From Thalia democratica (lineage: Eukaryota): DNA of 64,000 nucleotides. The notes beneath the pieces were generated by a model, which had not been told where the DNA came from, did not search any database, and saw only the letters and a list, made by a program, of their open reading frames with translations. The stretch lies in the NCBI GenBank assembly GCA_965202585.1, contig OZ241826.1, forward strand, positions 71,734,001 through 71,798,000, written 5' to 3'. A program made the translations under genes and the position numbers. Below, in pieces: positions 26,801 to 46,265 of this stretch; the first letter of the stretch is position 1; each line of letters opens with the position of its first letter.

Positions 26801-29374
26801 TATTTTAGTTTTAACTCACTTTTGTTATAAAATATTACGGTTTAAGAACAATAAACATTTTGGTTTTAAAAACGTATAAAATGTTTAAACTTGCTGTTCT
26901 AAGAACTTTAATTTTTTTCAACAGTTTTGAGTTTGAAACAACTTCCTCTTTTTTATTACGCTAAAAAGTATATAAAAATGTTAAACATGTTCAGTAAAAC
27001 ACAAGTAAATTCAAAGTTAGTCGAACTATCTATGAGCTACTAGTTTTTTTTTTTAATGATACCTTTTTACGAACTGTAAAACAAAATGATTGTGCAAAAG
27101 TTACTCGATCCTAAAATTAAGGTTTATACATTAAAACGACAACTTAGCTTTTCTTTAATTTATGCAAATTTATGTTTCAAAAGCCATTACTTACATCTTT
27201 AACCAGGTAAAGCTTAAAGTAAATTTAAAGTTTGTAAGCTTTCAATAAAAAACATTTTCAAATATTTATAGCAATGGGTACAGTGCCGCCCCAAGTAGCC
27301 AAAAACAGAGAGGAGAACAAACGGACACGGACGGCCTACTCGCGAGGACAGCTGCTGGAACTGGAAAAAGAGTTCCACTTCAACCGGTACATATCAAGAC
27401 CACGAAGAATCGAACTGGCAGCCGGTCTCAACCTAACCGAACGCCACATTAAAATATGGTTCCAAAACAGGTTGGAAGCCTTGTTTGAATTAGACCAGTA
27501 AAAATATTTGTGGCATTTTTTTTACCTTCTCTAAAAATTTTCCTATTTCGTTAATTCTAGTACTCTAATAAAACTTAGTCTAACAATTAACTGAACCGCT
27601 TTATACATCGTAAATAAAAGCATATAACAAAACTAAATAGAAAGTTTTGAGATTAATTTAAGAATACAAGGTAGCTTGTAAGTAGTATATGATCTAATAA
27701 CTGGCATTTAGAATTTGTTATTCATACAACCTTGTGATTTTTTAAACACTATTGCGTTTGGACTCATTTTTTAATTATAAAGTTATTTAAATCTTAATAA
27801 AACGGATACATAAAAATACATACCTCCAAAAAACTACAAAACTTATAGAAAACAAAAAATATTTAACATGTATAATGTCAGGTGTTAATTTAAACTTGAA
27901 GTTTTCAACTTTACTCAACTAAAAATACAAAAAAAAATTCCAGTTGCATTTTGATGAAATTCATTAAAAAATAAATTACAGACAGCATTTTTTATGACAT
28001 TAATTAGTTTAATTTTAACAATTATTGTAACTACGGATACAATTAATCAAAACAACGTATAATTACAATTAATCAAAAATAACGTAATACGTTTATTTAA
28101 TTAAAACATTATCAGTATTACTTACGTTTTGTATTTATGAAATTTTGTTTTTTTAAAGCTGTTTGACTTACTTGATAATTTTTTTCTAATTGATTAAACT
28201 TTTGAAAGTACTGTTTACAAAATCAGCTTTATTTGTAGATTAACGAAAATAGCCGTTGAATAAACTGAAATTACAGCGCATTTCAAATAGAATCCCAATT
28301 AGCAATCTTTGTCTTTCTCTTTTTATCAACATTCAGCTGATAACTTATCAACTTGTTCATTATTCTCACGTTCTTATATTTGCCGTCAAACAAGGCAAAA
28401 TACACTTGTGCAAGCCTAAAGTGGACTTTAATTGTTTAAACAGCCAGCGTTTAGCAATTAGCAGATTTCATTTATTATGCAAAATCGTTTTTCCAATGTT
28501 TTCAAAATCCGATCAATCTCAACTGTTTGTAAAGTATTTTCATCGGATTAGTAACGATTATTAAGTAAATATGCAGCGAAAGTGAAACAAGATTAGCTAA
28601 TCTGTACAAATATTAGTAAAGCTATTAATCAATTAAGACAAACGATACTTCTTGCTACTATTTTTTAAGCTTTTACAATCAATGCTTATTTATCTTCTAA
28701 ATTCAAATCACTATTTATTTTACATTTCAACTAAATCTTGGATGTGTATGTTAAAAACCAAAACGAAATATGTTAACAGAAATGCTGAAAACAATTTTAA
28801 AATAGCAATACAAATAAACAACACTCATAATTTTTCTTGCACAAATTAATATTTACTGTCAGATTAACAGTGTTTAATGCTCACAAAGTTAAATAATTTG
28901 AATATTCGTACAGTAATTTCAGTTTTTTTATGATTTCAAATCTAAAATAATTGTTTATGATGGCTGTACAGTACAATAATAGATAAACTATGTTAAAGTG
29001 AACTTTATAATAAAAATAAGCATTTTTCTTATGTAAGAAAAATAGAAGTAACACTTTAACCTAAAATACTTTTAAATTAATTACTTGTTTAATTTCTGTA
29101 TAAGTTACTATGACCATTTATATTGAGAAACTTTATATTTATAAAGTTTTTTTGTAAATATGTTTCATTTTCGTATGGACTTTAAGTAATACCCTGATAA
29201 ATGCATTTACCAAATTTCAGGAGGATGAAGTGGAAAAGAGACGCAAATTGTTCATCAGTACCGCAAAATTTGAATGATAAAACACACTACAGTAGTGAAG
29301 AAACAAATTCAAATACTAACACCGACCAAAACACTTCCACAATGACTTTTTCAAACAACGAGTACAGCTTATAG
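20813..29374 (+). CDS. Xlox: ParaHox homeobox protein Xlox/Pdx (IPF1); exons 20813-21251, 27272-27470, 29221-29374; 263 aa
   Basis: Hexapeptide FPWMK followed by a Pdx-type linker (HHYEWKLQW). Homeodomain [60 protein letters not shown] has the Pdx-diagnostic His44. Splice phases 1 and 2 are consistent. Confidence 0.95.
24181..24720. promoter_or_regulatory. GC-richer non-coding island in Xlox intron 1; candidate endodermal enhancer
   Basis: Four GATA cores (24185, 24258, 24443, 24513) and a Fox-type TGTTTGTTTA (24535). No splice-compatible coding frame was found. Confidence 0.35.
25389..26149. mobile_element. hAT-type MITE (761 bp) in Xlox intron 1
   Basis: TIRs CAGTGGTCGGCAC and GTACCGACCACTG. 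Perfect 8-bp TSD CATTACAC at 25381-25388 and 26150-26157. Subterminal GGGGTGCA repeats. Confidence 0.9.
28230..28600. promoter_or_regulatory. Non-coding island in Xlox intron 2; candidate enhancer
   Basis: Palindromic double GATA TGATAACTTATCA (28338-28350), Onecut-like ATCAAT (28512) and Otx/K50-type GGATTA (28545). Confidence 0.25.
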
Positions 29375-32325
29375 CGCTTATACATTTTTCTAATTTAGTT
29401 ATTGTTTTTACACTTTTCAAATAAGTTTGTTTCTTAAATTTAACTTTACAAGCAATTTATTATGCATTAACTGTTCCTAATTTTTGCATTTACGTAGCAG
29501 AACTTTTGGACAACTGATTTACAACGCTTTCGGAAATAAGGCACGTAAGGTAAACACAAAAAAAGTTGCTTCTCAAACAAAGTTTCAGTAGCAGAATAAA
29601 TTTACGTGTTGAATTAGCTAATTAAACCATATCTGTCTGGTTATCCCACGACTTAAAAATTATTTTTTAAGTGGTTTTTCATGTGAATTTGATTAGTACT
29701 TTTTTTCACAAAATAGTTAAAGCCGCTATACTTATAAGTTTAAGTTGATAAAGAGAAACAAGTATTCTAATTTTTTTATGCAACCATACAATTTTTCATT
29801 GTTGGTGTAAAATATTAGACACACTGCTGTTATAACAAAAAGTTTCCTTGACATTGATTTACTTTAGAACTAAAAAAGTAAAAGTACGTTTGCGTTTTGT
29901 TATAATTTATATTTTTATAAAATTAAAATTAACTAGTTTATACTTAATAAGCCTTATCAGTCTTCTATAGTTTTATCAAAGTTTATGACCGTAATAGCTG
30001 TACATGTTTCAAAACTCATTTGAATGTTTTACCAAGATACAATAAAATATAACTTTTTATATTTAATAAGTTGAAAATGTATAAAGTAATTTGTTGTTAA
30101 TTTTTTTTTCCAAACAAGTAGTTTTTTTTATTGTGTTTTTATAAAACTTGTATCAAACAGTTTTTTTTAAATTAAAAGTATACTTTATAATACTATAAAT
30201 ATTTTTATTTTATTGTTTTATATTCTGACACTTTTTATATTCTAACCTAAACTTTAGATTTTAAATATTTATTGATATACATACTTGTTTAATAAATCAA
30301 TATTTTAGCAAGTTTCATTTTTTTAAAAAGGAACTTATATACATTAACTTAAATAAGGTAAAAAGTAAATAAAGATCAAATTTTTGTTTAAGGCTCTTAA
30401 AAAAAAAATAAAAATCAAAATTGTTTTCTAGTGTAATAAGTAGTTTTATCTTTAGACATTTTTTGTGCTTAACTTTGTTTGTATTATACTGTTTCACTGC
30501 AGAGCAGCTCATCAGACACAAAAAAAAGCTTTAAACAAAATACAGAGGCGATGAACTAAAATAATAATAAGTAAAAATAAAACATGTATAAGCACTAATA
30601 CTTTGCTAATAAAAAAAACATGGGTAACCTTTAATATTTGTAAAAGAGTGTTATTAATATTTTTTTTCTTGAGTTATTTTTTAAGTTGTGTAATATACAT
30701 AACCTATGATTATTGAAAAATAAATAAAATTAAAGTTAATATCTACAAAGTTAAATAATTTATTTTTTATACTAAGCTTTGAAAAAACGTAAATATTAAG
30801 GTTTGGAAAAAAGATGTAACTAGAAAAAATATATATAACACTACTTTATCTTTGCTTGAGAAATACTTTCAATATCATTTTACTTAAAAGCTATCCGAAA
30901 GGTGGCGTCAGAGAAAAAATTCTTTAAAAAAATTTGTTAAAAATTAGATAAACATTTTTTACTTTATTTTTCATCTGATATATAGTTTAAACTTGTGTTA
31001 TAAGTTCATAAAAATAGTTGCAAAATGTCTTACATCTACCTTCTGCGTTTTGGAATTTCTAATACATATATATATATATAAACATTTAAAGCTCGCATAA
31101 ATGTCCTTAAAGTCATCGTCTTTTATAAAAGTAATAGTCGCTTAACAAAAACTTTTTTAAAACTTTAACTGAATAAATATAGACAATGAATATGAGGCAA
31201 GTACTTATTAAGTTGAAATATAAACAGTATTAACTATGAAATACAGAAACGAAATTAATCAATTTAAAAATCAATATTAGAAAGACTTTGTTTCGCTAAA
31301 CATTTTTGTTTTAGTTTTTAAACAATTTTTAAGTTTACTTAATGCTTAAAAGTTAATAAGCTGCATTTTTTGTAGTAAAAATAAAAAAACTTTAAGTTTG
31401 ATAAACTTAATAATACTATAAAAGACTTAATGAAATTAGTTAAGGGTTTTAACATTATATAACAATATGAAAATCAAATTATTATCTCATCAGAATTTAT
31501 GAGTATATTTTATGTAAATCTCATGAAATGTTGCTTATCATGTCAGAAAATTGCTTATTTGTATTTTAAAATTGTATTTTAGACCGAAAAAGTACATATA
31601 AAAAACTAGTTTAACAATAGTTTTACCGAAACTAGATAATTAAAAAATTTTAACTAGTGTTATATGTTTTTAAAAGAGTATTATGTGGTTGTACAACCTT
31701 TTATTTATCAATCCTTTTTTTTCAAATGTTTTAAAATTTTATAACACTTATCACAACTGAACTATAAATATTTTTCAAAAAAAAAATTTTTTTTTAAATC
31801 TTATGTTAAAAAGGTTTAGTATTTTAATAAAAACTGTATTGCAAGCATTTATGTAAAGTTACCTTTTACTTCTTACTATCACTTAATACAACCAACAACA
31901 AACAAAATGCTATGATGCAACGAGCCTTATAGTAAACAAGCTCACTTTATAAGCTTAATCCTGATAGACAATTGCAATTTAAAGAATTTTTATATTAGTG
32001 ATTAATTAAAAATTATTGCGTCTCTTATAACTTTTTTCTAAAAACCAATTACATCAAGCACAAAAAAAAACGTTGATATGCAACTAATTTGTAATAAAAT
32101 GTTCATTAGCATGTATCAAATAATCTTATTTTTCGTATAAAACGAGGCACGACCAAAAAAATTGTGCGGCGTTCATTGTAAAGCCCGGGGCTATTTGGTT
32201 TTTTCAGTGAAATTGTGATAAAATTTCATTCATTATTCACTCGAAGAAAGCCGATTGAAAGCAAGAAAACAGTCCTGAGCCAGTTTAGCGTTTTTTTTTA
32301 TTTTCGTTGTTATGTTTAATTAGTC

Positions 32326-35300
32326 ATGGACGGTGGACAGATTGCCCTGGTGGCCATTATTGGCTGCGAGGTCGCCGCCGTGGCAGGTCTCGTCACTTAC
32401 TTGCTTATTAGGCCAAGAAGACCGAAACCCGTTGAAGGTTTGACTTTTTTTGTACTAAAACTTATTTACGAGCTACTTGAAGCTGATTTTGTTTGTTTTG
32501 AATGAAAAAGTTTGAAAAATAACTATTCTAGGTAGAAGAGATGCTTTTTAGTATAAAATAACAATCTACGTTACCTTTTTATAATTGATCGTTTGATAAT
32601 TTATTATACAGATTTTTAAGTTTTTCTTATTAAAACGGTTTTTTAATCAAGTTTTAATTTTTGAGGCGTTTGCTTTTAAACGTTTACGTAGAAATTATAA
32701 AAAAATACAAATAAATAATTTTAATAATTTCTTTAAAAATATTTTTCTTATATACTTGAATATTATTAGTCTGAACTCGTATTCAGTTTTTAGTATTTTA
32801 AAACTAAAACAGCGGCGGCTAAAAATAGCTATGACATGTTTAATTTCGAAAAATTTGCATGTAAAATGCACACACGATTATTTAAAGTTGGTCACGATGT
32901 AACGTCAGATCTTAGAATCTTAGCTGTTCAACTTATAAACTTTTAAAAACACAAACATTTCAGACAACTCTTGTTGTGAGCTTTCGTAAACAAGAGTCAC
33001 ATTAAATTTCAAAAAGTCTGTAACTGATAGCAACCACGCCCGCTACTTTTTTCGTTTATCCTAAGGCACACGCAACATTTGCGCTGTGCATTCCGATATA
33101 ATATTACATATTGACATTTCATTCTTCCCACACAAACAGGGGAGCACGAATTCGTTCAATCACTTGCCTCATTAGCTCTTACATTTGATTTTGTTGGGCT
33201 GTTAAAATATAGTTTAGGAGCTGAGTTATTCATGTTTAAAGAGTATTAGTTAATCTTTGTTTCATGCATCGATCTTTTTCTTTAAAAAAACATCTTGTAA
33301 CCACAGAAGAAATACTTAAACATTCTTTAAGGTTAAATACTTAGTTAAAATGGCAACACCACAAACTACATACTTTCTTAATCGGATTAAAGTCATTTAG
33401 TTTTAAAAAATTTGTAATTGTGTATAATTTCATGCAAAGCATCTATTTCAACATCTGGTATATCATTTTTACTTAAAATTTCAAAATTTTTAGAAAAACC
33501 AAAGCTAAGGCCAGAAGAGACAATAGCAACTGTGTATGGAAATCCAGAAAAAGATGAAGAGCCTGCTGAAGTAGTTATAACAATCGAAAAGGTATTTTAC
33601 AACAAATCGTATTAAAAGCAAAACTGTTCTTAGGTTATCATAATTTAAATCCAAAAAAAAAGAGTTTATGTTTTGTAAGTTTTGTCTTTAAAATTTCTTT
33701 TTGTAACAGCCCGACTCAGAGAAAGAAAGCGATGTAGAATCAGGTAAGTTTTAAAGTTAAATTATACTTAAAATTTACAATTCTAAAAAACTTTGTATTT
33801 TTATTTCAGTAATATCAGAACCAGACAAAAAGCCCCTGGAAGAAACTGTAATTCAAGTCGAGTCTGATGAAAAGGTAACGATTTTATGTTTTCTATTTTT
33901 TCACAATCACTGAAGTACTTTAATTTGCGACTTAACTATTAACCAATAAATTAATTCACAGGAAAGTAGCTCGTCTTCAAGCAGTTCCTCGAGCAGCTCG
34001 TCGGAAAGCGAAAAGGAAGAGGAGGAACCGGACAGATCGGTCGTCATAGAGATCGAAGCTCCCGCCGAAAAAGCTCCCTCCATGTCAAGCTCGACGAGCG
34101 TTTCCGACGTAGCGTCCCTTCCCAAAGACCCTGAGCAAGTCGTTGTGATAGCCGTGGAACCGGAGGAAAGCTCCTCATCGAGCAGCAGCTCGTCTGAGGA
34201 GGAGGAGCCGGAAGTGCCCGTGGTTGTGGTCGTCGAGGCGGAGGAAAAACCAGCGAGCTCTTCATCGTCTTCGAGCTCTTCTGAAAGCGACGAGGAACCG
34301 GAAACGGTCGTCGTCGTCGTTCAAAAGCCGGCGTCGAGCTCTTCCAGTTCTTCGAGCGAGAGCGAAGCAGAACCGGAAGTCGTTGTCGTCGCGAAAGAGT
34401 CTTCGTCATCAAGCTCGTCTTCCGAAGAGGAGGTTGAAGTAAAGACCGTTGTAGTTGAACTCGTGGAAAAACTACAAAGCTCTTCCAGTTCCTCGAGCTC
34501 TTCAGAAAGCGAAACGGAAGATGAACCGGTCGTCGTTGCAGTTGTCACTAAAGAAAGTTCTTCTTCTTCGTCAAGCTCTTCCTCCGAGGAAGAAAGCGAA
34601 ATTGAAGTGAAGACTGTTGCAGTCGAACTCGTGGAAAAACAAGAAAGTTCTTCTTCGTCATCGAGCTCTTCGGAGAGCGAAAAAGAAGATGAGCCGGTCG
34701 TCATTGCGGTTGTTGCCAAGGAAGAAAGTTCTTCTAGCTCTTCCTCGTCGGAGAGCGAAGACGAAATTGAGAAGATCGAAGTTGTTGTCGACACCATGGT
34801 CATTGCAACTTCGAGCTCCTCCTCTTCTTCCGCTTCGTCTTCTTCCTCATCTTCATCGGAAAACGAAGAAGAGCCTCCGGTCGTGGTCTCGGTGAAACCT
34901 TTAAGCTCTTCGTCGTCCAGCAGCGAAGAAGAAATTCAACCGGTAGTGGTCGCTGTTGTGCAGCAGCAAAAACCACCGTCTTCTTCATCTTCTTCTTCGT
35001 CAGAGAGCGAAAATGAAACTTCTACGCTCAACGTCGTCCTCAAAAAAGTAGTGAGAAAGAGCTCTTCGTCTTCTTCGTCGTCTGCGTCTTCCAGCGAGCC
35101 TGAAGGCGAAGTCAAAGCCAAAGTCAAGCACTTCGAGTCGAGAACGACCACCGTGTTTGCGAGAAAGGAAAAAACGAGCAAGGAAGCGGCCAATTTGGCG
35201 GCGGCGACCTTTTCCGACAAGGAAGTCGAGAACATTTTTGCGTCAGCGGAAACTCAAACGGCGCCGAAGACGAAGCCGAAGCGCCGGAAGAACAAGCAGA

Positions 35301-38300
35301 TCCAGACCGACCGCTTTACCACTTCGAGCTCAAGCTCCTCCAGTTCTTCATCTTCTTCTTCGAGCGACGACGTCGGTCCTCGCGTGCTGACCGCAAGCCC
35401 GCTCAACTTCGTCCCATCGCCGGAAGATGGCGCCGTCAGCCCGTACTCGATCGCTACCATGACGGAAACGGTGCAGGTCAAGGCGGTGAAGACGAGAAAG
35501 GTGAAGAGGAAGAACAAGAAGCTGCAGACGAACTTGGTGACGGAGTCGGACTCTTCGTCGAGCAGCTCTTCGACGTCTTCCAGCGAGTACAGCATCGACG
35601 CCAAGACGCCGAAGCGCAAAAAGAAACAAGTAAAAAGGTTCGGTTTGATTTTTGGAAATAAGTAAAACAAGATATTATAGAGTTCAGCTCAAATTAAGTG
35701 ATAATAAAATAATTAGTCCTAAGACAATTAAGAAAATTAAAAATGAAATAAAGAAAAAAACAGTAAAAATGTTTCTTTTCCGTCAGGTTCATGTCTCCCG
35801 CCCCCGCAACGACAAGCGAAAGCGAGCGAGCCACTTCTCCGACGACCTACTCGACAAAGTACTTCTACAACGTTAACAAGGAGCAACGTCACCGAACGAC
35901 AGCGCACATCGACGTGAAGAGCGTCGTCACCGAAGAGCAAGGTTTGTTTTGAAACTACTTGTGTTATTAGTCTGATTTTTTTAAGTATTAATTTAACAAT
36001 TAAAAGTATTTACAAATATAAAAACCCTTGCTCTGGTTTTGTTATAGGTGTTTTAGTAGAAAAAACACTTCTTCATATTACATGGTCTAAATATAATAAA
36101 GTTATAATTAAGCTTAAATAAAATGATTGAAAACATTGAAATTTAGTAAAATTGCATTATAATATGTAAATAATAAAAACTTGTAGAACCAAAGGTCATA
36201 ACAGTAGCATCGCCACCAAGAGTCACTTCTCCGTTATCGTCTGACGCCGAAATACAAGCCATTCAGCTCGCCGTGAGTTTAAACACTTTTGCAATAAAAT
36301 CATACCAGGCAGCTTTTTAAACTCTTCTTTGCAGGATGAAGGCACGCAGACAATCAGCTTCAAAGATTCGTCAGTCGTTCAGTCAACACCGCGACCTAAA
36401 ACAAGGTATAAAATTTTGTAACTTTAGTGATCTTTTCACAATGTTATTTTGTTCGTATTTGTTATTTAGGCGAGAGAAGTTCTTTATGTCGGGTTGGAAC
36501 AAACGGGTTTCCAGTCTCGATCTCATCAATGCCGGTATCATTGAAGAAACTACCATTGAAAAGATTGAGCTAGGTAAAATGTGATACTTACCATCAATTA
36601 TTTTCTATTATATTTTCTACCCTTATGTAGCTTTAAAAAATATAGCTTTTTATTTTAATATGTAATAACTAAATCAAGTACAAGTAAAATTATAATAATG
36701 TTTTAAGTACTTTATAAAGATAATAGTTTCTATGTTGTACTTTGAAAGTAAAAACTATTTACATACCTTCATTTACCTTTTAGAACCGCATAAAAATATA
36801 TCTTTATTGTGAATACTACAAACAAGAACTTTGTTTAAGTGACGTTTTTTATCTTTATAAATACTCTAAAAAAAAAATTTCTTACTTATGATTTTTTAAC
36901 GTTTATAAACTTACACTGAATAAAATAAGCTTAACATATCCTCAAAAATCTTTAAAGTACAAGACTAAGTATTAGTAAACTTGTTTTTTGTTATGAACTA
37001 AGTTTTTTATCTTACTTTCAAAACTATCTTTGAACTAATATATTTGTAACATGTACTTACTCAACATAAAAATTCAGGTGAGATTCTTGAAGAAGAGGTA
37101 GAAAGATCAATTCATCAATATTTAGTTGGTGAAGAAGCAATTGCTGGTGTTATCAATGAAAATAGTGAAAAATTGACGCTTCAAGATGCTTACAAAAAAC
37201 GATTATTGAAGAGAAGTTTGTAAATTTATATGTATGAAATGTTGAAAATTTTAGTAAGTGTTTTGTAGGACGACAGTTTAAATGAGTTTAATTAGATATA
37301 TAATATTTGAGTTCACATTACATGTCTGACAACTTATGTCAAAGTTTAATAACTTAAAAGACTGCTACACTTAAATACTTTTCAATAAAAGTATTACTAA
37401 TAATTTTTTGTTCTTTTAATAATCATAGGAACAAACTTTTAATTTTTCTTTAATATCTGATAACAATAAAACACTTATATTAAATTACATTTTTTAATTT
37501 TTTTCAGCAAACACTGATAGCATATAAAAAAAGCTATAAATAATAAAAACTAAAGTAACTACAATACACTCAGATTTCATAAAATACTCTTAACCTGTTA
37601 CTGTATACAAAGTTAAATTGATAGAACAAAATTTTTAATAAAATAATGAATAAATGAACCATAATTAGTTTTCTTGCTTGGAAAATTTATTGAGCCAATT
37701 TATCTATAAAGGTATTTACGATCAACTTATGTCACGTTTAGTATTTAATTAATGATGTTTACTTCAACCAACATTAAAAGATCTTAAACTCTTAATAATA
37801 GTTATTTACGTATAATATTTATACACAACAAACAAATATTATTTTATTTCAGAATAACAATACAGCAAATGTTTTCCGTATAAGGTTGAACAAAACAATA
37901 ATTTAAAAGTATATTTATATATTTTTTCAAAGTGATATAAACATAATAAAAAATTCTGAATACTAATATTTCTAAAATAATTCAGCGAAGTTGTTACGGT
38001 CATAAATTAAAAGTTTGTTTTAGTTTGTTTAAGTAAAGCACATTTACTTTTGGCGTGATTTATTAGTTTTCGCAAGAGTTTAGTTAATAGGATAAAAATT
38101 AAGATAAGCAAATTAATTCATCAAAATATTAGTGTTTTATAAGTAAAAATTCTGTAACTATACAGGTACTGTTGTGAGCCTATTAGAGGCCCAAGCAGCT
38201 ACTGGAAGAATAATAAATCCATTGGATGGAGAAAAGATGTCTGTTGATGAGGCTAGAATCAAGGGTTTAATTGATCGACAATTTGAAGTTGTTCTTAGAA

Positions 38301-41300
38301 GGTAAGTACTTCATATAAATATATTTTTTGAATTATTTATAATTACAAAGCATAAAAACTTAACAGTGATTTATGTTGCTAGTCTTCTACTTTAAATAAA
38401 ATCTCTATATTGTAAAACTTACTTTGATAAGTATTATTGTTTTAAATAACTAATACTATCTGTTGGTGGATATACTAATGCATATATTTTATTTGAACAG
38501 GTTTACTATTTAATTTCACGTATATTTTAGTTATTATACCAATTTCATTGAAGGAAAGGTAAGAAGTCAGAAGTTTGAACTTGATTAAAATTTTAAGTAG
38601 AAGTAGTTCTTTTACGTTTTAGTAACTAAAATTTTCAAACGCTTCTTCTCTGACAATTAACTTGTAATTCAATCGACTTTGTTTAATTTTGCAAGTTTTA
38701 GTATATGATGTTCAATCGTTTTGATTTACAGGTAGAAACCTTTACTACTTTGATTAAATTTATGTTGTTAAATAAAAATAGAAGTTACTAAGTTTTCTAG
38801 TTAGTTTTTTACTTATTTTTTTTCTAAACCTAGTTGATGGTAGTACATTAATTTAAATGTTATTTGCTTATAGCACTTTGAAAAAATTGTAAATTTTAAG
38901 AGTTCATAAACCAGTTTGTGATTAATCTGTTTTAGTAACTTACCTATAATTTAACATATCTCTAAATATTTTAATCAATTAACATCAGAGCTGAGAGAGC
39001 AGTGACAGGTTTCGGGCGAAACACGAGCGATACGAAGATGATGTCGTTGTTCGAAGCGATGAACCGTAACATTGTTGTAGAGCAGCACGGAATCAGAATG
39101 TTGGAAGCACAAATTGCTACCGGAGGTACTTTGACTTTTTGATTAGTTCTTATACTTGGTTATTGTAGATTTTTGTTTTATTTTCGCTAGTATATGATTT
39201 TAATTTTAAAGTTATGTATTATTAGTGTATTAAGTTCCATATTATACCACAGGTCTTCATTTTATAAGTATAAACATTGTTTCCAACCTAGAATTTTTTT
39301 TAACTTTATTTAACTTGACTAATAGCTATCTTGAATTGACAGGAATAATCGATCCGAATGCCAACCATCGCTTGCCAGTGGAAGCTGCATTCAAGAGAGG
39401 ACTTTTTGACAACAGGCTCCACAGAATATTAGAAGACCCGAGCGATGACACCAAAGGCTTCATTGATCCGAACACAAACGAAAATTTGTCCTACCTCGAA
39501 CTAATGGGAAGGTTTTATATATTTTTAGCAAATTATTTACATATTTAACACATGCTTTTTTCTATAACTTCTGTATAACCTTTGAATTAAAAAGAACTCA
39601 CTAAATAAAAAAAACACATTTAATTTTTTTCAGATGTATAATCGATAAAGACTACGGTCTTCGACTGCTTCCGTTGTACAACCTTCAGTCAACGAGTAAA
39701 AGTTCAACTTCAACCACAACAACCACTATAATTACAGAAGAAATTACTGAATCAAAAACTAGAAAGTCTTCTTCAAAGTTTGTTCTTTTGTTTCCTAATT
39801 GAAGTTTTTTTTGTCCTATTCATTGTTTTACCTACAAGGCTTTGCCTTTTGTTTACCTTATTAACTTACTTGTTTTTATGTATGTAAAGTAAGGTGTTTC
39901 ATTAAAACTAGTTGCCAAACGTTTCAATAAAAAATAATCTTAAAATCATTAATAATTTCATCATTCTACTTTCTAACTACCACTTGTTGGTTAAATAGCC
40001 AACTTATTATCAAGAAAATTAGTATGATTGTTAAAAAGCTAGTGATAATTACTTAATGCATAAACTTATTGAACATAACAAAATTAAAAAAGGAAATCTA
40101 GAAGAGATATGTTCTTCACATCTGGTTGGCAGAGAAAGGTTTCAATTCAGGACCTGATGGATGCCGGTATCGTTACTGAAGAAACAGCTGTTAAAATGGA
40201 AGAAGGTTCTTGAGTTATTTTGTATTATACGACAACTTTAATACATCAATAATGACTTTATTAAATAAGCTTATGATAAATGTTTATAAAAAACTGATCT
40301 TTAAATGCTATGATCACCAAATATAGATTAAGTAGTACATCTTTGAAATAAAATACATTTTTACAAACTGCAACAACCGCTCGTTTCTTTGTTTTAAGAA
40401 TAAAGCAAACATATGTTAAAGTTAATAAGAAATAATTTATGAGATAAAATTTTAAATTCTAAGTAGAATAGTACATACATTGAATTTTTAAATAATTTTT
40501 TTTTAATTCAAACATTTTTAAAAAGCATTGTTTTTAATTAAATAAAAAAAAAAATTCAATCATATAATTAATATTAAAAACAAAAATTAAGTACAACACA
40601 ATTAATTTTAGTAATTTAATGTAAAAAAAATAAAAAGTATAAAATTTATAAAAACTATACATGTATATTTACATTACTATTTTTTAACTAGGGGCAATTA
40701 GTGAGGAAGAAGTAGAAAACCAGGTTAAATTGTATTTGGTTGGTGAAGAACCAATAGCCGGGTTACTAATGGTTGAAAGTGGTGAAAAGTTGTCCATTTA
40801 CCAAGCTTGGAAGCGTGGATATATAAGAAGAGGTAGTTTTACATTAAAATACTAATTTTTAGAATCAACATTTATTTTACTTAGTAATGGTATATCTTCA
40901 AGCAACTGAACCTAATTTTTTTACAAGCTTTTAATTTTGTTTTATTTAGGAACATCAATTAATTTGTTGGAAGCTCAAGCTGCTACGGGAAGAATCATCA
41001 ACCCAGTGACGGGGGAAAAGCTTTCGGTTAAAGAAGCAGCTAGCAAGAAATTAATTGACAGACAGTTTGAAACGTCACTGTCTAGGTTAAGATTTTTATT
41101 TCTGCTAAAATCAATTTATCAAAAAGTTTTAAAGATTAAAAACGTATAACAAATCCAAGGTTAATTTTGATTATCACAAACTGAAATGTTTTTGGTTAAG
41201 TAAGTTTAGTTTCAACAAAGACTGTTTCGTAAAACTTACTTATCCTCGATTTATATAAACTTCAAAACAACTACATTGCGGTTTGAGGTTTCCTACAATC

Positions 41301-44300
41301 TTTTTTCTAATTAAGCGACATGTAATATAAATTAAACTTCTTAACAGAGCCGAGCGCGCAGTGACCGGCTACAAAACGCGAACGCTTCCAAAACCCATTT
41401 CGCTGTTCGAAGCGATGAAGCGAGAGCTGGTAGTCGAAAGCCACGGAATTCGTTTGCTGGAAGCGCAGATAGCAACTGGAGGTATGTTGCGGTTGAATTC
41501 CGTTTGTTACACGCAACTTGGTGTAAATTTAAAACCCTGGAGCTTAGAGCAAAATACTTAGTTTTAGAATAATTTGACGTCTTTAAAAACTGTGTATTAA
41601 TTTTAACGTTAAACTTTGATGCTTGTAAACGTTTTTCCCCTTTTTAAAACTATCAAATAATCGTCACTTTTTTAATACCCTTTTGAACAATATTTATTAA
41701 ACATATCTATAAACTTATTTAAGACAAATGTTTAATACAAAATAAGTATAAGTTTTTTGAAAGTTCCATTTTCTAAGAAAAAAAATAACTTAAACGTAAT
41801 AGATTAAAAAAAGTACTTGTGTATATAAAAAAAATGTCTAGGAATAATCGATCCTAATGCAAACCATCGTTTGCCCGTGGAAGCAGCTTATAAAAGAAAC
41901 TTGTTCGACAAACGTCTCCATGCGATCTTGGAAGATCCCACAGATGATACCCGAGGCTTCTTCGATCCCAACACCGAAGAAAACCTTACTTATCTTGAGT
42001 TAATGGAAAGGTTTAATAAAGAAAAACATAAATTTAATGTTTACATGCTTAAGCTTGTTTTGTACTATATTTTCAAGTCAAAAATACCAAATTTTTTTTA
42101 AGTATAAAAATTAAAAATGTTGTAATAAAACTTTTATTTTCAAAAGTAAACTGTTGTGTTTTTTTTCAATTTCTTATTTTTAAGAATTTTGCCAATAGCT
42201 TTAAATAAAACAGATGTGTTACTGATCAGGACACGGGTCTTCGTCTTCTTCCTTTCATGCAGATGCCGGTGAAGCACGCGTCTAAAGTATCATCAAAGGT
42301 ATGTTGAAAGTTTCCAATAACTATTATTTAAAGAAAAATATAATTAAAAAATATAAGTAAGTAAACATGTAGGTATGTAGAAATCATATCTCAAAGTTAT
42401 GCTAAATCTAAAACTACACTTGAGAAGAATTTTATAATATAAATTTAAAAAAAACTTTAATTTAAAGATGCTGTTCGAGTCTGAGAACAAAGCGGAGGTG
42501 TACATGAAAGACATCATTGCCGCGGAGCTCGTTGACAAAACGACAGCGGAAAACTTCGAGAAGGGAACGATGACCAAGGAGGAGGTGAAGAGAATAGTGG
42601 CGGAACTGAGGGTGTTCGTCGACGGAACAATGCCCATTGCTGGAATCATAAATGCAATGACTGGTACTTTTTCATGCATAAAAATCACTACTTTTAATTT
42701 TTGAATTACTTTTTGACGGGTGCTTATATTTTTACAAATACAAATCGTTAACAACTGTTTAGATTTCATGACTAACTTTTTTGATACTTAGACTGTTTTT
42801 CAAGATGTTGAATAAAAAAAACATTGAAGGTGAGAAGATGAGTATACTGGAAGCCACAAAATGCTCGTTGATCCGAAGAGGAACAGCTTTTGAGCTGTTG
42901 GAAGCGCAAGCAGCTTCGGGAAAAATCATCGACGTCCAATCAGGAAAGTCGATTTCTCTTGAAACCGCTTTCAACACCAACGTCATTGACCGGTTTGTAC
43001 AAAGCTTTATCGATTCCTTTAATATGATAATTGATATCAAAAGTAGTTAAACTTAACTTTTTGGTTTTTATATATATTTATTTATTAATAATTGAATTAT
43101 AGAGAGTACGAAGATGTGGTAAGGAGAGCATACAGAGCAGTCGTCGGGTACCGCGAACCTTTCAAGCGTCAAGTGCTTTCGTTGTGCGAAGCTATGTCGA
43201 GGCATTTAGTATTTGAAAAACATGCAATAAGGTACAATTAAAAATCAGTATACTATACTTGTTTTTAAGTAACAACTTTTAACCACATTTCTTAACTACA
43301 TATCATAATAAGAAAAACTGAGACCTAGTTTACTAACAACCAACTTTATATCAGGCTTTTGGAAGCGCAATTGGCAACTGGAGGTTTTGTTGATATAAAA
43401 TCACCGGTGAGAATAAGCGCAGACGTTGCGGCAAAGCGTGGCTTGCTTGACTCAACATTGGCTGATAAGCTGGGTAGCAAACAAACAAAGAGTTATTTCG
43501 ATCCAGTAACTGGTGAAAATCTAAACTATTCTGAACTTATGGGAAGGTTAGTTACTTACCAAACTTTTACTTACTTTGTTATGATTTAATAATTCATCAA
43601 ATTTTACAATGTTTTTATTATAAATTAATTAAGACCTAAAAGTTGTTAATGGAGTCTCAAAAGTGATATTTTACAAAGTGTTGAAAGCCTTTTAAACTTG
43701 GTAAGGCTATAAGTGTTTTCCGAAAATAAATAATTTTTTTTATTTTTTTTTAAATTTCAGTACTTTAACTGTTATAAAACATTAAAAACTAAAGTTCAAC
43801 TTATAGAACATTAAAATTTAAGGGTTGTAAAAACTAACTACAACTTTCAAATTTAAAAAGTCCTCAAAAAATATTTTTTTTGTTTATATAGTGAAATGTA
43901 CCTAAAATACAATACAAAGTATTTGTATCACAGATGCGTGCTGGATAGAGACAGCAACTTGTTGTTCCTCATGGTTGAAGGTGGAACGGTTACAGGAAAC
44001 ATAAGACCGTTCGAACCACAACCTGAGAGAAAACGAATCAGGGTAGAAGAACAGCTTGCCAACGTGAGACTGAAGGTTTGAAAGAACATTTAAACGTATT
44101 TTTACAAAAAATCATATGTACTGGTAACAAACTTAATCAATTTCACTAGTTGTAAAAACTTAAACAACGTTACGAAAAATTCATTAGGTTGTAAAAGCAA
44201 AAAGGAAAAAGAAGAGCAAACGCAAGAAGGAGAAAAGGTCCTCATCGGCGTCAGGTTTTCTGTCAATAAATAAACTCAGTAACATTTTTTTCTTTTTCTA

Positions 44301-46265
44301 AACACCTTTTTATATTTTTCAGAGTCGTCTTCCAGCAGCCGGCCGACGTCTCCTTCATTTTCGGGTGACAGCAGACCGACTTCGCCCTCGATTCTCAGCA
44401 GGAAAGTCGTCATCGTCGATCCGGTCACCGGCGAGGAGCTCTCCATTCACCAAGCCCTGGCCAAGGAGCTCATCGATCGGGGAACGGCAGACGAGCTTCT
44501 GGCTCAAGAAGGAGAGTTTACTGAGGAGTCGACTCAGAATTCACCTGTTCCTGACGTTGTTGAAGAGGAAGAAAAAAAGGTTGAAGACGCTCAAGTTGAA
44601 GTAACTCAAGTAGTTAGTGAGACAGCAACTGAAGAAGTTCCTATCATCATAAGTGAAGAGACGGAAGTAGTAGAAGAGACTCCGGATGTTGAAAAGGCAG
44701 TAGCGGTCGAAGAAACTTTGAAGCAGGTTGTAGAAGAAGTTTTAGAATCAGCTGAAACAGTTGCGGTCGTTGAAGAAGCTGCAGATGTACAATCGGCTGT
44801 TGTGATTGAAGAAGCTGCAACTGAAAAAGAAACTGTGGTTGAAACTAAGGAAGATACAGCAGTTTCTGAAGACAATAATAAAGAATCGTCTTTCGTAGAA
44901 ACTGTCAAAGAAGCTATCGAAGATTTCTTTGATTATGACAAAGGAGAAGGTGTTTCTCGAGAAAGGCGATCAAGCTCTTCAAGCTCTTCTAGTTCAAGTT
45001 CCAGCTCAGACACTTCAGAAGATTCTATAAAAGTCGAAGAAAACCAAGTTGAACTGGAAGAAATCCCAGTTACTGTAGTGGTTGAAGAAGCTGCAGTTGC
45101 TGAAGAAGCTGCAGTTGCTGAAGAAGCTGCAGTTGTTGAAGAAGCTGCAGTTGTTGAAGAAGCTGCAGTCGTTGAAGAAGCTGCAGTCGTTGAAGAAGCT
45201 GCAGTGGTAGAAGAAGCTGCAGTTGTTGAAGAAGCTGCAGTTGTTGAAGAAGCTGCAGTTGTTGAAGAAGCTGCAGTTGTTGAAGAAGCTGCAGTGGTAG
45301 AAGAAGCTGCAGTTGTTGAAGAATCTTCGACTGCTGTAGAAACTCAAGGTGTTCAGGAAGCATCTACTGCTGAGGAATTTACAGATGCTGTAGAAGATCT
45401 ATCACAAACTGCTGTTGAAGAAACTAAGATAGCTGAAGAGAAGGAAGCGTCTTCTTTTGTAGAAACTATCAAAGAAACAATCGAAGAGTTTTTCGATGGT
45501 GACAAAGAAGAAAGTATGTCTCAAGGACGAAGGTCAAGCTCTTCAAGCAGCTCTAGTGACAGTTCAGCAACTTCAGAGGAAAATCAAGCTGAGCTAGAAG
45601 AAATTCCAGTCACTGTAGTCGTTCAAGAAATTTCTACTGCTGAAGAAGTATCAGTTGGTCAAGAAGCCTCTACTGTTGAAGAAACTGATGAATTTAAAGA
45701 TGCTATAGAGGATTTATCACAGGCTTCTGTTGAAGAAAGTAAAGTAGCTGAAGAAAAGGAAGATTCTTCTTTTGTGGAAACTATCAAAGAAGCAGTCGAA
45801 GAGTTCTTTGATGACGACAACTTAGAAAGCGTGTCTCAAGGAAGAAGATCAAGCTCTTCAAGCTCAAGTGACAGTTCAGAAACTTCAGAGGAATCAGTTA
45901 AAGTAGAAGTGATTGTAGAAAAACCAGAAAATGAAGTTGAGTTGGAAGAAATTCCTGTAACAACAGAATATTCAGTTGAAGCCGAAGAAGAGCAACAAGC
46001 AGTTGTGAAAGCCGAAGGATCAAGCAGCTCAGTTCACGTGGAAACGTCAAGTTTCAGCAGCGAAGGCGCAGAGATCAGACAGACGAGCGCATCAACTTCA
46101 ACTTTGTCGACTCACCACCAAACCGTCGAGAGGTTCTCGTCGGTGGAGACGGTTGAGCACCGTTCAGTTGTCGTGACTACAACCCAAACCGTACAGGAGC
46201 AGCACTTTGAAACCAGCGAGCAAGTAGTAGTTGAAAGCAGTCAACAACCAGATACTAAAGAGTAA
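32326..46265 (+). CDS. Membrane-anchored plakin-repeat (plectin/epiplakin-like) protein, 27 exons, about 2241 aa. Exons: 32326-32437, 33494-33591, 33710-33743, 33810-33874, 33962-35637, 35787-35941, 36187-36272, 36335-36405, 36470-36573, 37078-37215, 38166-38301, 38989-39125, 39343-39511, 39634-39777, 40102-40205, 40692-40832, 40950-41085, 41348-41481, 41842-42010, 42214-42298, 42468-42663, 42830-42992, 43103-43231, 43355-43546, 43934-44075, 44188-44254, 44323-46265
   Basis: Repeated plectin-repeat signatures ([71 protein letters not shown]) and a plectin-type linker ([24 protein letters not shown]). All junctions are GT-AG, phases chain without stops, and the total of 6726 nt is divisible by 3. 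Confidence 0.88.
33962..35130 (+). repeat. Coding low-complexity repeat: (Ser)7-17 - acidic - Val-rich - Lys modules of about 27-35 aa, roughly 13 copies
   Basis: Examples: [25 protein letters not shown] and [26 protein letters not shown]. Confidence 0.9.
45084..45317 (+). repeat. Coding 18-bp minisatellite, 13 units ([12 protein letters not shown])
   Basis: GAAGAAGCTGCAGT(T/C/G)G(T/C)(T/A) repeated in frame. Confidence 0.95.

Follow-up and report, generated by a model that had tools for sequence, protein, structure and literature searches.

A tunicate gene predicted to join an N-terminal membrane anchor to plakin repeat domains in Thalia democratica

The 64,000-nucleotide stretch of Thalia democratica DNA analysed here (the window; assembly GCA_965202585.1, contig OZ241826.1, positions 71,734,001 to 71,798,000, forward strand) carries a plus-strand gene for a protein with plakin repeat domains (PRDs), whose first exon encodes a hydrophobic segment. 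An earlier note on this DNA had proposed the product as a direct tether between a membrane and intermediate filaments. We find that the membrane-type helix is joined to the PRDs in RNA and that this combination is conserved across tunicates. Judged by sequence, the Thalia gene is a member of a conserved tunicate family and not a one-off.

Gene structure and transcript evidence

AT-rich overall (~25% G+C), the window has islands of higher G+C content at 34-36 kb and 44-46 kb. The gene was modelled from RNA joints, GT-AG sites, reading frame and the parallel exon layout of the three PRDs. A first open model had 26 exons; the 27th (44188-44254) was added from P0001, a 519-aa transcript-derived protein from a marine eukaryote catalogue. 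The final model is one gene of 27 exons, with GT-AG at every junction, encoding 2,244 aa. Coding sequence begins in exon 1 with the ATG at 32326; this exon ends at 32437, where a GT donor follows (32438-39), and the stop codon lies at 46263-65. An in-frame TAA (32317-19) stands 5' of the ATG, within the RNA contig. The predicted domain order is a 5-residue N-terminus, a transmembrane (TM) segment at aa 6-28, the basic sequence RPRRPKP, a Ser/Glu-rich spacer, three PRDs, a half-linker that resembles a plakin repeat (PR-like), and an acidic tail. The features, all on the plus strand, are as follows, with the evidence in brackets.

32293..32325, +, 5' untranslated region of exon 1 covered by the RNA contigs (RNA, sequence)
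32326..32437, +, exon 1 coding: MDGGQ, 23-residue hydrophobic helix at aa 6-28 with Glu15 inside, RPRRPKPVE; predicted uncleaved signal anchor (RNA, hydropathy, homology to the N-termini of P0170, P0154 and P0043)
33494..33874, +, exons 2-4 (33494-33591, 33710-33743, 33810-33874): acidic juxtamembrane region with the conserved P[DEG]..[VT].T.[YF] (RNA junctions, alignment)
33962..35637, +, exon 5: 559 codons of poly-Ser, acidic and poly-Val repeats with basic clusters; predicted disordered (RNA, model)
35787..36405, +, exons 6-8 (35787-35941, 36187-36272, 36335-36405): Ser/Thr/Pro-rich spacer ahead of PRD1 (RNA, model)
36470..39777, +, exons 9-14: PRD1, aa ~766-1042 (PF00681 on exons 11 and 13, RNA junctions to exon 11, model)
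40093..42298, +, exons 15-20: PRD2, aa ~1043-1301, exon pattern as in PRD1 (Pfam, model, identity to Ciona F6UIB0)
42468..44075, +, exons 21-25: PRD3, aa 1302-1575, nearest to desmoplakin PRD-B (Pfam, P0001, structure-chain alignments)
44188..44254, +, exon 26: basic cluster, 67 nt, aa 1576-1598 (present in transcript-derived P0001)
44323..46265, +, exon 27: Ser/Pro stretch, PR-like half-linker (RKVVIVDP... from 44400), acidic Glu/Val/Ser tail and stop (P0001, Pfam, alignment)

The RNA consists of contigs from two runs (X1 and X2) of one marine metatranscriptome sample, which are not mutually independent, and matches the gene at 95-99% identity. X1 record 1 (815 nt) and X2 record 5 (1022 nt) both start at 32293 and are colinear through the ATG; for contigs aligned to 31500-37400, depth is zero across 31500-32287. 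The junction 32437>33494 (GT..AG), which the earlier note had predicted, is present in the RNA and joins exon 1 to exon 2 in frame with the PRD body. Further RNA joints were found at 33591>33710, 33743>33810, 33874>33962, 35637>35787, ~35941>36187, 36272>36335, 36405>36470 and 36573>37078, and the contigs extend into ACTGTTGTGAGCCTATTAGAGGCCCAAGCA, the exon at 38166. Overlapping contigs thus tile from exon 1 to PRD1; tiling is not proof of a single molecule, nor is the contig end at 32293 a mapped transcription start. Two DNA-like runs carry none of these exon joints.

Support for the 3' part comes from P0001, which was found at 84% identity in a word-index search with the last exon and was the sole true match there, the rest being bacterial low-complexity noise. 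It supports exons 22-27, that is, the junctions 22>23, 23>24 and 24>25, the extra exon 44188-44254 and the start of the last exon at 44323. Exon 44188-44254 was possibly missed in the earlier note, and the last exon now starts at 44323. A word-index search with the Ser/Glu-rich exon 5 for N-terminal transcript fragments returned none at E <= 1e-10 and was swamped by low complexity.

Several smaller features of the RNA were noted. Exon 1 has one listed difference between RNA and genome, 32373 C>T, at a synonymous third position. At 35939 the RNA has T and the genome A (Gln to Leu at the exon 6/7 boundary), an allelic genotype difference. A 309-nt skip (34351>34661) was rejected as an intron, since its ends are TC..CA and it is in frame inside a 103-aa internal duplication; this skip in the Ser/Glu spacer is a genotype copy-number difference or an assembly collapse. 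A 3-codon upstream open reading frame (ORF; ATG TTT AAT TAG) occupies 32313-32324, and the acceptor-like sequence TTAATTAG lies at 32316-23, directly before the main ATG; the RNA contigs continue unbroken across the two. Spliced-leader trans-splicing at the AG just before the ATG was set aside, as both RNA contigs read through from genomic sequence.

An N-terminal hydrophobic helix

The hydrophobic segment comprises 23 residues (aa 6-28; mean Kyte-Doolittle hydropathy 2.40) and is the sole segment in the 2,244 aa with a 19-residue mean of at least 1.6 (maximum 2.34), the next best window reaching 1.48. Net charge is 0 in its N-terminal flank and +5 in its C-terminal flank, and there is no positive n-region. 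The features of a type III signal anchor, namely at least ~20 hydrophobic residues, no positive n-region and a positive C-flank, are thus all present. The 23-residue core, the missing positive n-region and the basic cluster behind the helix point to an uncleaved anchor rather than a signal peptide. We infer that aa 6-28 would form an uncleaved N-out/C-in signal anchor, with the 5-residue N-terminus outside or lumenal and the remainder cytosolic, the orientation that the earlier note had predicted and with which the flank charges are consistent.

The charge asymmetry around the helix holds in most members of the tunicate family described below, whose helices have hydropathies of ~2.3-3.2 over 21 residues and up to 3.45 over 19. 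Since the family helices are strongly hydrophobic, and since sister paralogues have a true signal peptide followed by a TM segment, the endoplasmic reticulum (ER) route appears the most likely one. We place the target membrane, with a slight balance of probability, at the ER or at the plasma membrane reached via the ER; a mitochondrial target is possible and clearly less probable, and other locations would make up the remainder.

Plakin repeat domains and a half-linker

PF00681 (Plectin repeat) matched exons of all three PRDs, with E values down to 8e-16, and scored 123.7 bits on P0001. PRD3 matched the desmoplakin structures 5dzz (E 1e-69) and 1lm7 (E 2e-39), followed by envoplakin and plectin (both E 3e-19). 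Its end-to-end alignments to desmoplakin PRD-B and PRD-A score 135 and 99 bits; those to envoplakin, plectin and desmoplakin PRD-C are weaker. The Pfam matches and the desmoplakin homology bear out the three PRDs counted in the earlier note, and the product qualifies as a plakin-repeat protein, as its Plectin repeats are homologous to solved PRDs.

In Pfam scans of the two large ORFs, Plectin was the sole family to pass its curated cut-off; individual scans did not extend to the short exons 2-4 and 6-8. Likewise, none of the spectraplakin features (calponin-homology (CH) actin-binding domain, spectrin-repeat rod, GAR/EF-hand end) was detected with Pfam, in agreement with the earlier statement that the protein has no CH, spectrin/plakin or rod region. 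It is not a plakin in the strict sense, which is defined by an N-terminal plakin domain with spectrin repeats and SH3 and by a coiled-coil rod; the RNA contigs begin 33 nt 5' of the ATG.

In envoplakin, the groove residues R1895, K1901, R1914, R1952 and K1994 bear on vimentin binding (PMC4782060). Chain 4qmd was mapped as residue = index + 1821, and the mapping was checked on R1895, K1901 and R1914. In PRD3 the equivalents of K1901 and R1952 are both Arg, while those of R1895, R1914 and K1994 are Val, Val and Ser; near the first two, basic residues stand 2-3 positions off. PRD1 and PRD2 carry the same two Arg positions (..AERAVTG.. and ..NHRLP..), by eye only.

The plakin linker is bi-lobed, with two PR-like motifs, a DWEEI-type element and a basic groove (PMC7035337). 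The module after PRD3 starts at aa 1624 and consists of one PR-like motif, with a weak match to the periplakin linker 4q28 (E 0.076, chain residues 13-58). A second lobe was not found after this motif; the acidic tail stands in its place. The 'plectin-type linker' of the earlier note is thus reduced to one PR-like module. The same half-linker is carried by Ciona F6UIB0 and by P0170.

Relatives across tunicates

A HMMER search with PRD3 and the linker (P0001:1-310) returned 429 proteins at E <= 0.001, the best 150 of which were scanned for hydrophobic segments. Fourteen cluster representatives among these best 150 of 429 have an N-terminal TM segment; the named ones are all tunicate (Oikopleura, Styela, Ciona, Clavelina), except for one frog dystonin isoform, P0123; further TM-PRD proteins may occur outside tunicates. 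PF00681-type relatives with an N-terminal TM segment, which the earlier note had asked for, are thus at hand. They include Oikopleura dioica E4YEV7; Styela clava XP_039254157/8, XP_039247898.2 and XP_039253948; Ciona intestinalis XP_026695644.1 (auto-named 'epiplakin'); several Clavelina lepadiformis proteins; and unnamed marine contigs. In Pfam, ten tunicate or marine TM-bearing relatives have Plectin repeats only.

The similarity extends over both ends of the architecture. The N-terminal 103 aa of the Thalia protein match P0170 (E 1.7e-14), Styela P0154 (1e-9), Oikopleura P0043 (8e-5) and P0058 (6.5e-4), and in the PRD2-PRD3-linker body, over about 500-600 aa, identity reaches 65% with Ciona F6UIB0, 56% with P0170 and 54-55% with Oikopleura. 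In the aligned helices the common pattern is ..E/Q....GLV.YLL.RP+. A polar column in mid-helix (Glu15 here, 32368-32370) is Glu in 6/9 family members, Gln in 2/9 and Leu in 1/9, which hints at an intramembrane partner or a targeting role. The juxtamembrane motif P[DEG]..[VT].T.[YF] (TVYGNP here) follows the helix at a distance of some 15 residues, spans the exon 1/2 join and is also present in P0170, P0154, P0043 and P0058. The 3.9-kb mRNA contig that encodes P0170 has stop codons shortly before the ATG; in this independent, full-length message, the TM segment therefore also stands at the true N-terminus.

The Thalia protein has what defines the tunicate TM-PRD family, namely a homologous TM exon, the juxtamembrane T.Y motif and collinear PRDs. 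Orthologues and paralogues with such an exon are present among appendicularian, ascidian and pelagic tunicate sequences. Its closest counterparts (E4YEV7, XP_039247898.2, XP_039254157.1, F6UIB0 and P0170) are alike in the homologous TM exon (the N-terminus being missing in F6UIB0), an acidic or Ser-rich spacer and one to three PRDs. They differ in length: the Thalia protein is about twice as long, owing to its expanded Ser/Glu spacer and to a 650-residue acidic tail with FFAT-like motifs that they lack. Because the homologous TM exon, the motifs and the PRD body are kept across tunicates, the comparison indicates that the architecture predates the appendicularian/ascidian split and is under selection; this conservation also argues that the anchor is functional.

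The best 120 matches of a word-index search with P0170 were all fragments of vertebrate plectin and epiplakin. In the literature searched on plakins and PRDs in tunicates we found no published description of a TM-PRD family; all that came up was a Ciona 'plectin/desmoplakin/epiplakin' orthologue named in passing, and a synteny study. The family is present in public databases as unnamed or auto-named predictions, and we could not find it described in papers. The earlier caution that such proteins might already be described in this lineage thus applies to database entries, and no paper was found.

Spacer and acidic tail

About two thirds of the Thalia protein is low-complexity Ser/Glu/Val sequence. 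The Ser/Glu/Val-rich spacer (aa 38-765) has a net charge of -56 and is predicted to be disordered; its 728 aa agree with the ~730 aa of disordered repeats reported previously. Together with the basic clusters, this Ser-rich, acidic spacer may be a regulated, phosphorylatable tether. The acidic tail runs to aa 2244 and has a net charge of ~-135. It contains an 18-nt tandem array (45073-45323, 13.9 copies) encoding (AAVVEE)n; as P0001 has fewer copies, the length of the array varies between individuals.

Three FFAT-like cores, DFFDYDK, EFFDGDK and EFFDDDN, occur in the tail at 44922, 45486 and 45801 (+), each after ..ET.KE.IE. They have the form [DE]FFD.D with acidic upstream tracts, positions 5 and 7 being non-canonical relative to an EFFDAxE-like core, and each lies within a repeated unit, SSFVET.KE.IE.FFD.D....S..RRSSSSSS. 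The cores are present in transcript P0001 and absent from the orthologue P0170, and are probably lineage-specific.

Proposed role and alternative readings

Taken together, the locus is best explained as a single gene of 27 exons whose 2,244-aa product would be a plakin-repeat protein crossing a membrane once and anchoring filaments there, a reading that we consider reasonably probable. We propose that the helix would insert uncleaved in the N-out/C-in orientation and reach the ER or plasma membrane via the ER. The ~730-residue Ser/Glu-rich spacer, probably phosphorylated, may hold the three PRDs tens of nm from the membrane, where their basic grooves would bind intermediate filaments in the manner of desmoplakin, envoplakin and plectin PRDs. 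Such a protein would pin filaments to the membrane without an adaptor, with the mid-helix Glu/Gln and the juxtamembrane T-x-Y motif as candidate partner-binding sites. An N-terminal TM segment is a plausible plakin anchor, given the precedents of plectin 1b and dystonin-a2. With 5 exposed residues and no ectodomain, the protein would depend on a partner for any link to the matrix or to adjacent cells. The further suggestion of the earlier note, that one polypeptide could replace a desmosome- or hemidesmosome-like complex, does not hold for the same reason: an adhesive ectodomain is required, and the protein alone cannot supply it.

Several points weigh against this reading. Insertion, topology and target membrane are what we infer from sequence, and the insertion itself is borderline rather than strongly favourable: Glu15 and three Gly within the helix bring the summed biological-scale insertion energy to ~0. 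Only 2/5 of the envoplakin groove positions are basic in the PRD3 alignment. The junctions of exons 11-21 are modelled from GT-AG sites, frame and paralogy between the PRD copies rather than seen in RNA. The RNA donor has a slightly different genotype and comes from one environmental sample. Finally, other first exons may exist.

This last possibility, that exon 1 is one of several alternative first exons and the anchored form one isoform beside soluble ones, is the alternative that survives best, a real prospect that we nevertheless rate well below the preferred one. Vertebrate plakin genes set the location of their products by alternative first exons (PMC2426950, PMC3279385), and the acceptor-like TTAATTAG just before the ATG would fit such a layout. 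In addition, the Oikopleura cluster contains a TM form (P0043) and a form without TM (P0163), and the current gene model of Ciona F6UIB0 has no TM segment, its N-terminus being missing. These TM-less database models may, however, be truncated predictions. In Thalia, both RNA contigs cross the acceptor-like site from 32293, and no contig joins exon 2 elsewhere. The upstream neighbour also leaves little room for other first exons: an Xlox/Pdx-type homeobox gene (27238-27480 and 29201-29374, +), with its homeodomain split after WFQNR, ends its last exon at ~29374, ~2.95 kb 5' of the ATG, as stated in the earlier note. Pfam searches with the exon-1 peptide and with the ORF at 28256-28564 gave no match.

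Slightly less likely is a mitochondrial outer-membrane signal anchor like that of plectin 1b, which would tie mitochondria to intermediate filaments. The layouts are nearly the same, with a very short N-terminus, a TM segment at aa 5-27 in plectin 1b and aa 6-28 here, and a positive C-flank, and the mid-helix Glu lowers the effective hydrophobicity of the Thalia helix, in keeping with its near-zero insertion energy. Mitochondrial targeting of plectin 1b goes with moderate TM hydrophobicity and a net positive C-flank (PMC2426950). Hydropathy is 2.40 in Thalia against 1.49 in plectin 1b, figures compared as such and not by sequence, and relatives reach ~3.1-3.2 over 21 residues and up to 3.45 over 19, values that point to the ER under that rule. 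Two further points count against a mitochondrial anchor: the paralogues with signal peptide and TM segment use the secretory route, and no similarity to the vertebrate dystonin TM region was detected at E <= 1e-3.

It is improbable that the PRDs serve something other than filament anchorage, the protein being an acidic phosphorylated scaffold or an FFAT-based contact-site tether. The three [DE]FFD.D cores with their acidic tracts, the extent of low-complexity sequence and the two basic groove residues out of five would suit such a role. The PRDs, however, are highly conserved (65% in Ciona, 54-56% in P0170 and Oikopleura), while the FFAT-like tail is absent from P0170, which argues for selection on the PRDs and the TM segment and not on the tail. 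We also know of no PRD ligand besides intermediate filaments. Least of all do we credit a cleaved signal peptide and a secreted or lumenal PRD protein: the extreme N-terminal position and the small residues AVAG could resemble a cleavage region, but the 23-residue core is too long, a positive n-region is missing, the core is followed by a +5 cluster, the helix is conserved beyond its hydrophobicity (GLV.YLL.RP), and in every case known to us PRDs are cytosolic filament-binding modules.

Comparison with known membrane-filament linkers

In textbooks, the attachment of intermediate filaments to membranes exemplifies the multi-protein plaque, and the plakins known to us that carry a membrane helix of their own are single isoforms of two giant vertebrate genes. 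Those isoforms contradict the premise of the earlier note that plakins are purely cytosolic. Plectin 1b has a TM segment (aa 5-27) encoded by exon 1b; through it the protein sits in the outer membrane of mitochondria and ties filaments to these organelles (PMC2426950). It resembles the Thalia protein in its first-exon N-terminal TM segment, positive C-flank and membrane-held, PRD-bearing cytolinker body, and differs in having an actin-binding domain, a plakin domain, a 200-nm rod and six PRDs, and in being one isoform of many. Dystonin-a2 likewise has an N-terminal TM segment and localizes to ER and nuclear-envelope membranes (PMC3279385). Dystonin/BPAG1 isoform 2 (a2/b2) is similar in this segment and in its ER/perinuclear membranes, and the frog isoform P0123 combines TM and PRD; unlike the Thalia protein, dystonin belongs to the giant spectraplakins, having CH domains and spectrin repeats and ending in a microtubule-binding region. 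In plectin 1b and dystonin-a2 the anchor is thus an optional first exon on a giant cytolinker, and the difference here is a compact family that keeps only anchor and PRDs.

The C-terminus of desmoplakin (PRD-A, PRD-B, linker, PRD-C) is similar in that a PRD is followed by a VVIVDP...-type linker module. The Thalia protein has no PRD-C, one linker lobe and neither plakin domain nor rod, and its membrane attachment would be intrinsic; without a plakin domain or rod, it has no route to desmosomal armadillo proteins. Epiplakin shares the presence of PRDs without plakin, rod or actin-binding domains and differs in being soluble, with at least 13 PRDs and no TM segment. A synteny survey did not find an EPPK1 homologue in Ciona (PMC8782857), which makes the automatic name 'epiplakin', given to several tunicate family members, misleading.

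Single-pass proteins that couple membranes to intermediate filaments also include the nematode fibrous-organelle receptors MUP-4 and LET-805, and nesprin-3. They are distinguished by large ectodomains or a KASH domain; their connection to filaments goes through VAB-10A or plectin, and they are not known to use PRDs of their own.

Tunicates, the closest invertebrate relatives of vertebrates, appear to have a conserved family made essentially of a helix and filament-binding domains alone. Such a family would offer a minimal, genetically tractable system for asking what PRDs need for filament anchoring, which membranes they serve and how the plaque proteins of desmosomes and hemidesmosomes originated; Ciona has an orthologue as well as routine electroporation and CRISPR. 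Recognition of the family also corrects the misleading automatic names 'epiplakin' and 'desmoplakin-like' in tunicate proteomes.

To our knowledge, tunicates lack the vertebrate desmosomal cadherins and desmoplakin. A wider scheme, speculative and in its entirety unlikely, would have tunicates couple filaments to membranes through their own self-anchoring single-pass PRD family, with the mid-helix Glu and the T-x-Y motif docking the PRD proteins to an adhesion receptor in the membrane, and with the FFAT-like tail in Thalia tying together surface membrane, ER and filaments. If this were true, the 'B-type PRD then linker' unit would have been a free-standing membrane cassette before the present desmoplakin and plectin tails.

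Other tunicate PRD proteins

Other types of membrane-attached PRD proteins were seen in tunicates (P0189 in Ciona, P0117 and P0140 in Clavelina, and P0180, which is Ciona XP_026695644.1). The types among them include a signal peptide followed by TM, PDZ and PRD, and a ~500-aa protein, auto-named 'epiplakin', with a TM segment and one PRD. One Clavelina protein starts MSFLLGCCGGRKKKKRGKK, a candidate lipid or polybasic anchor. The TM-PRD protein P0095 is encoded by an intronless gene on the 5.8-kb contig SRR23998775_163396 (L001), beside a trypsin gene on the opposite strand.

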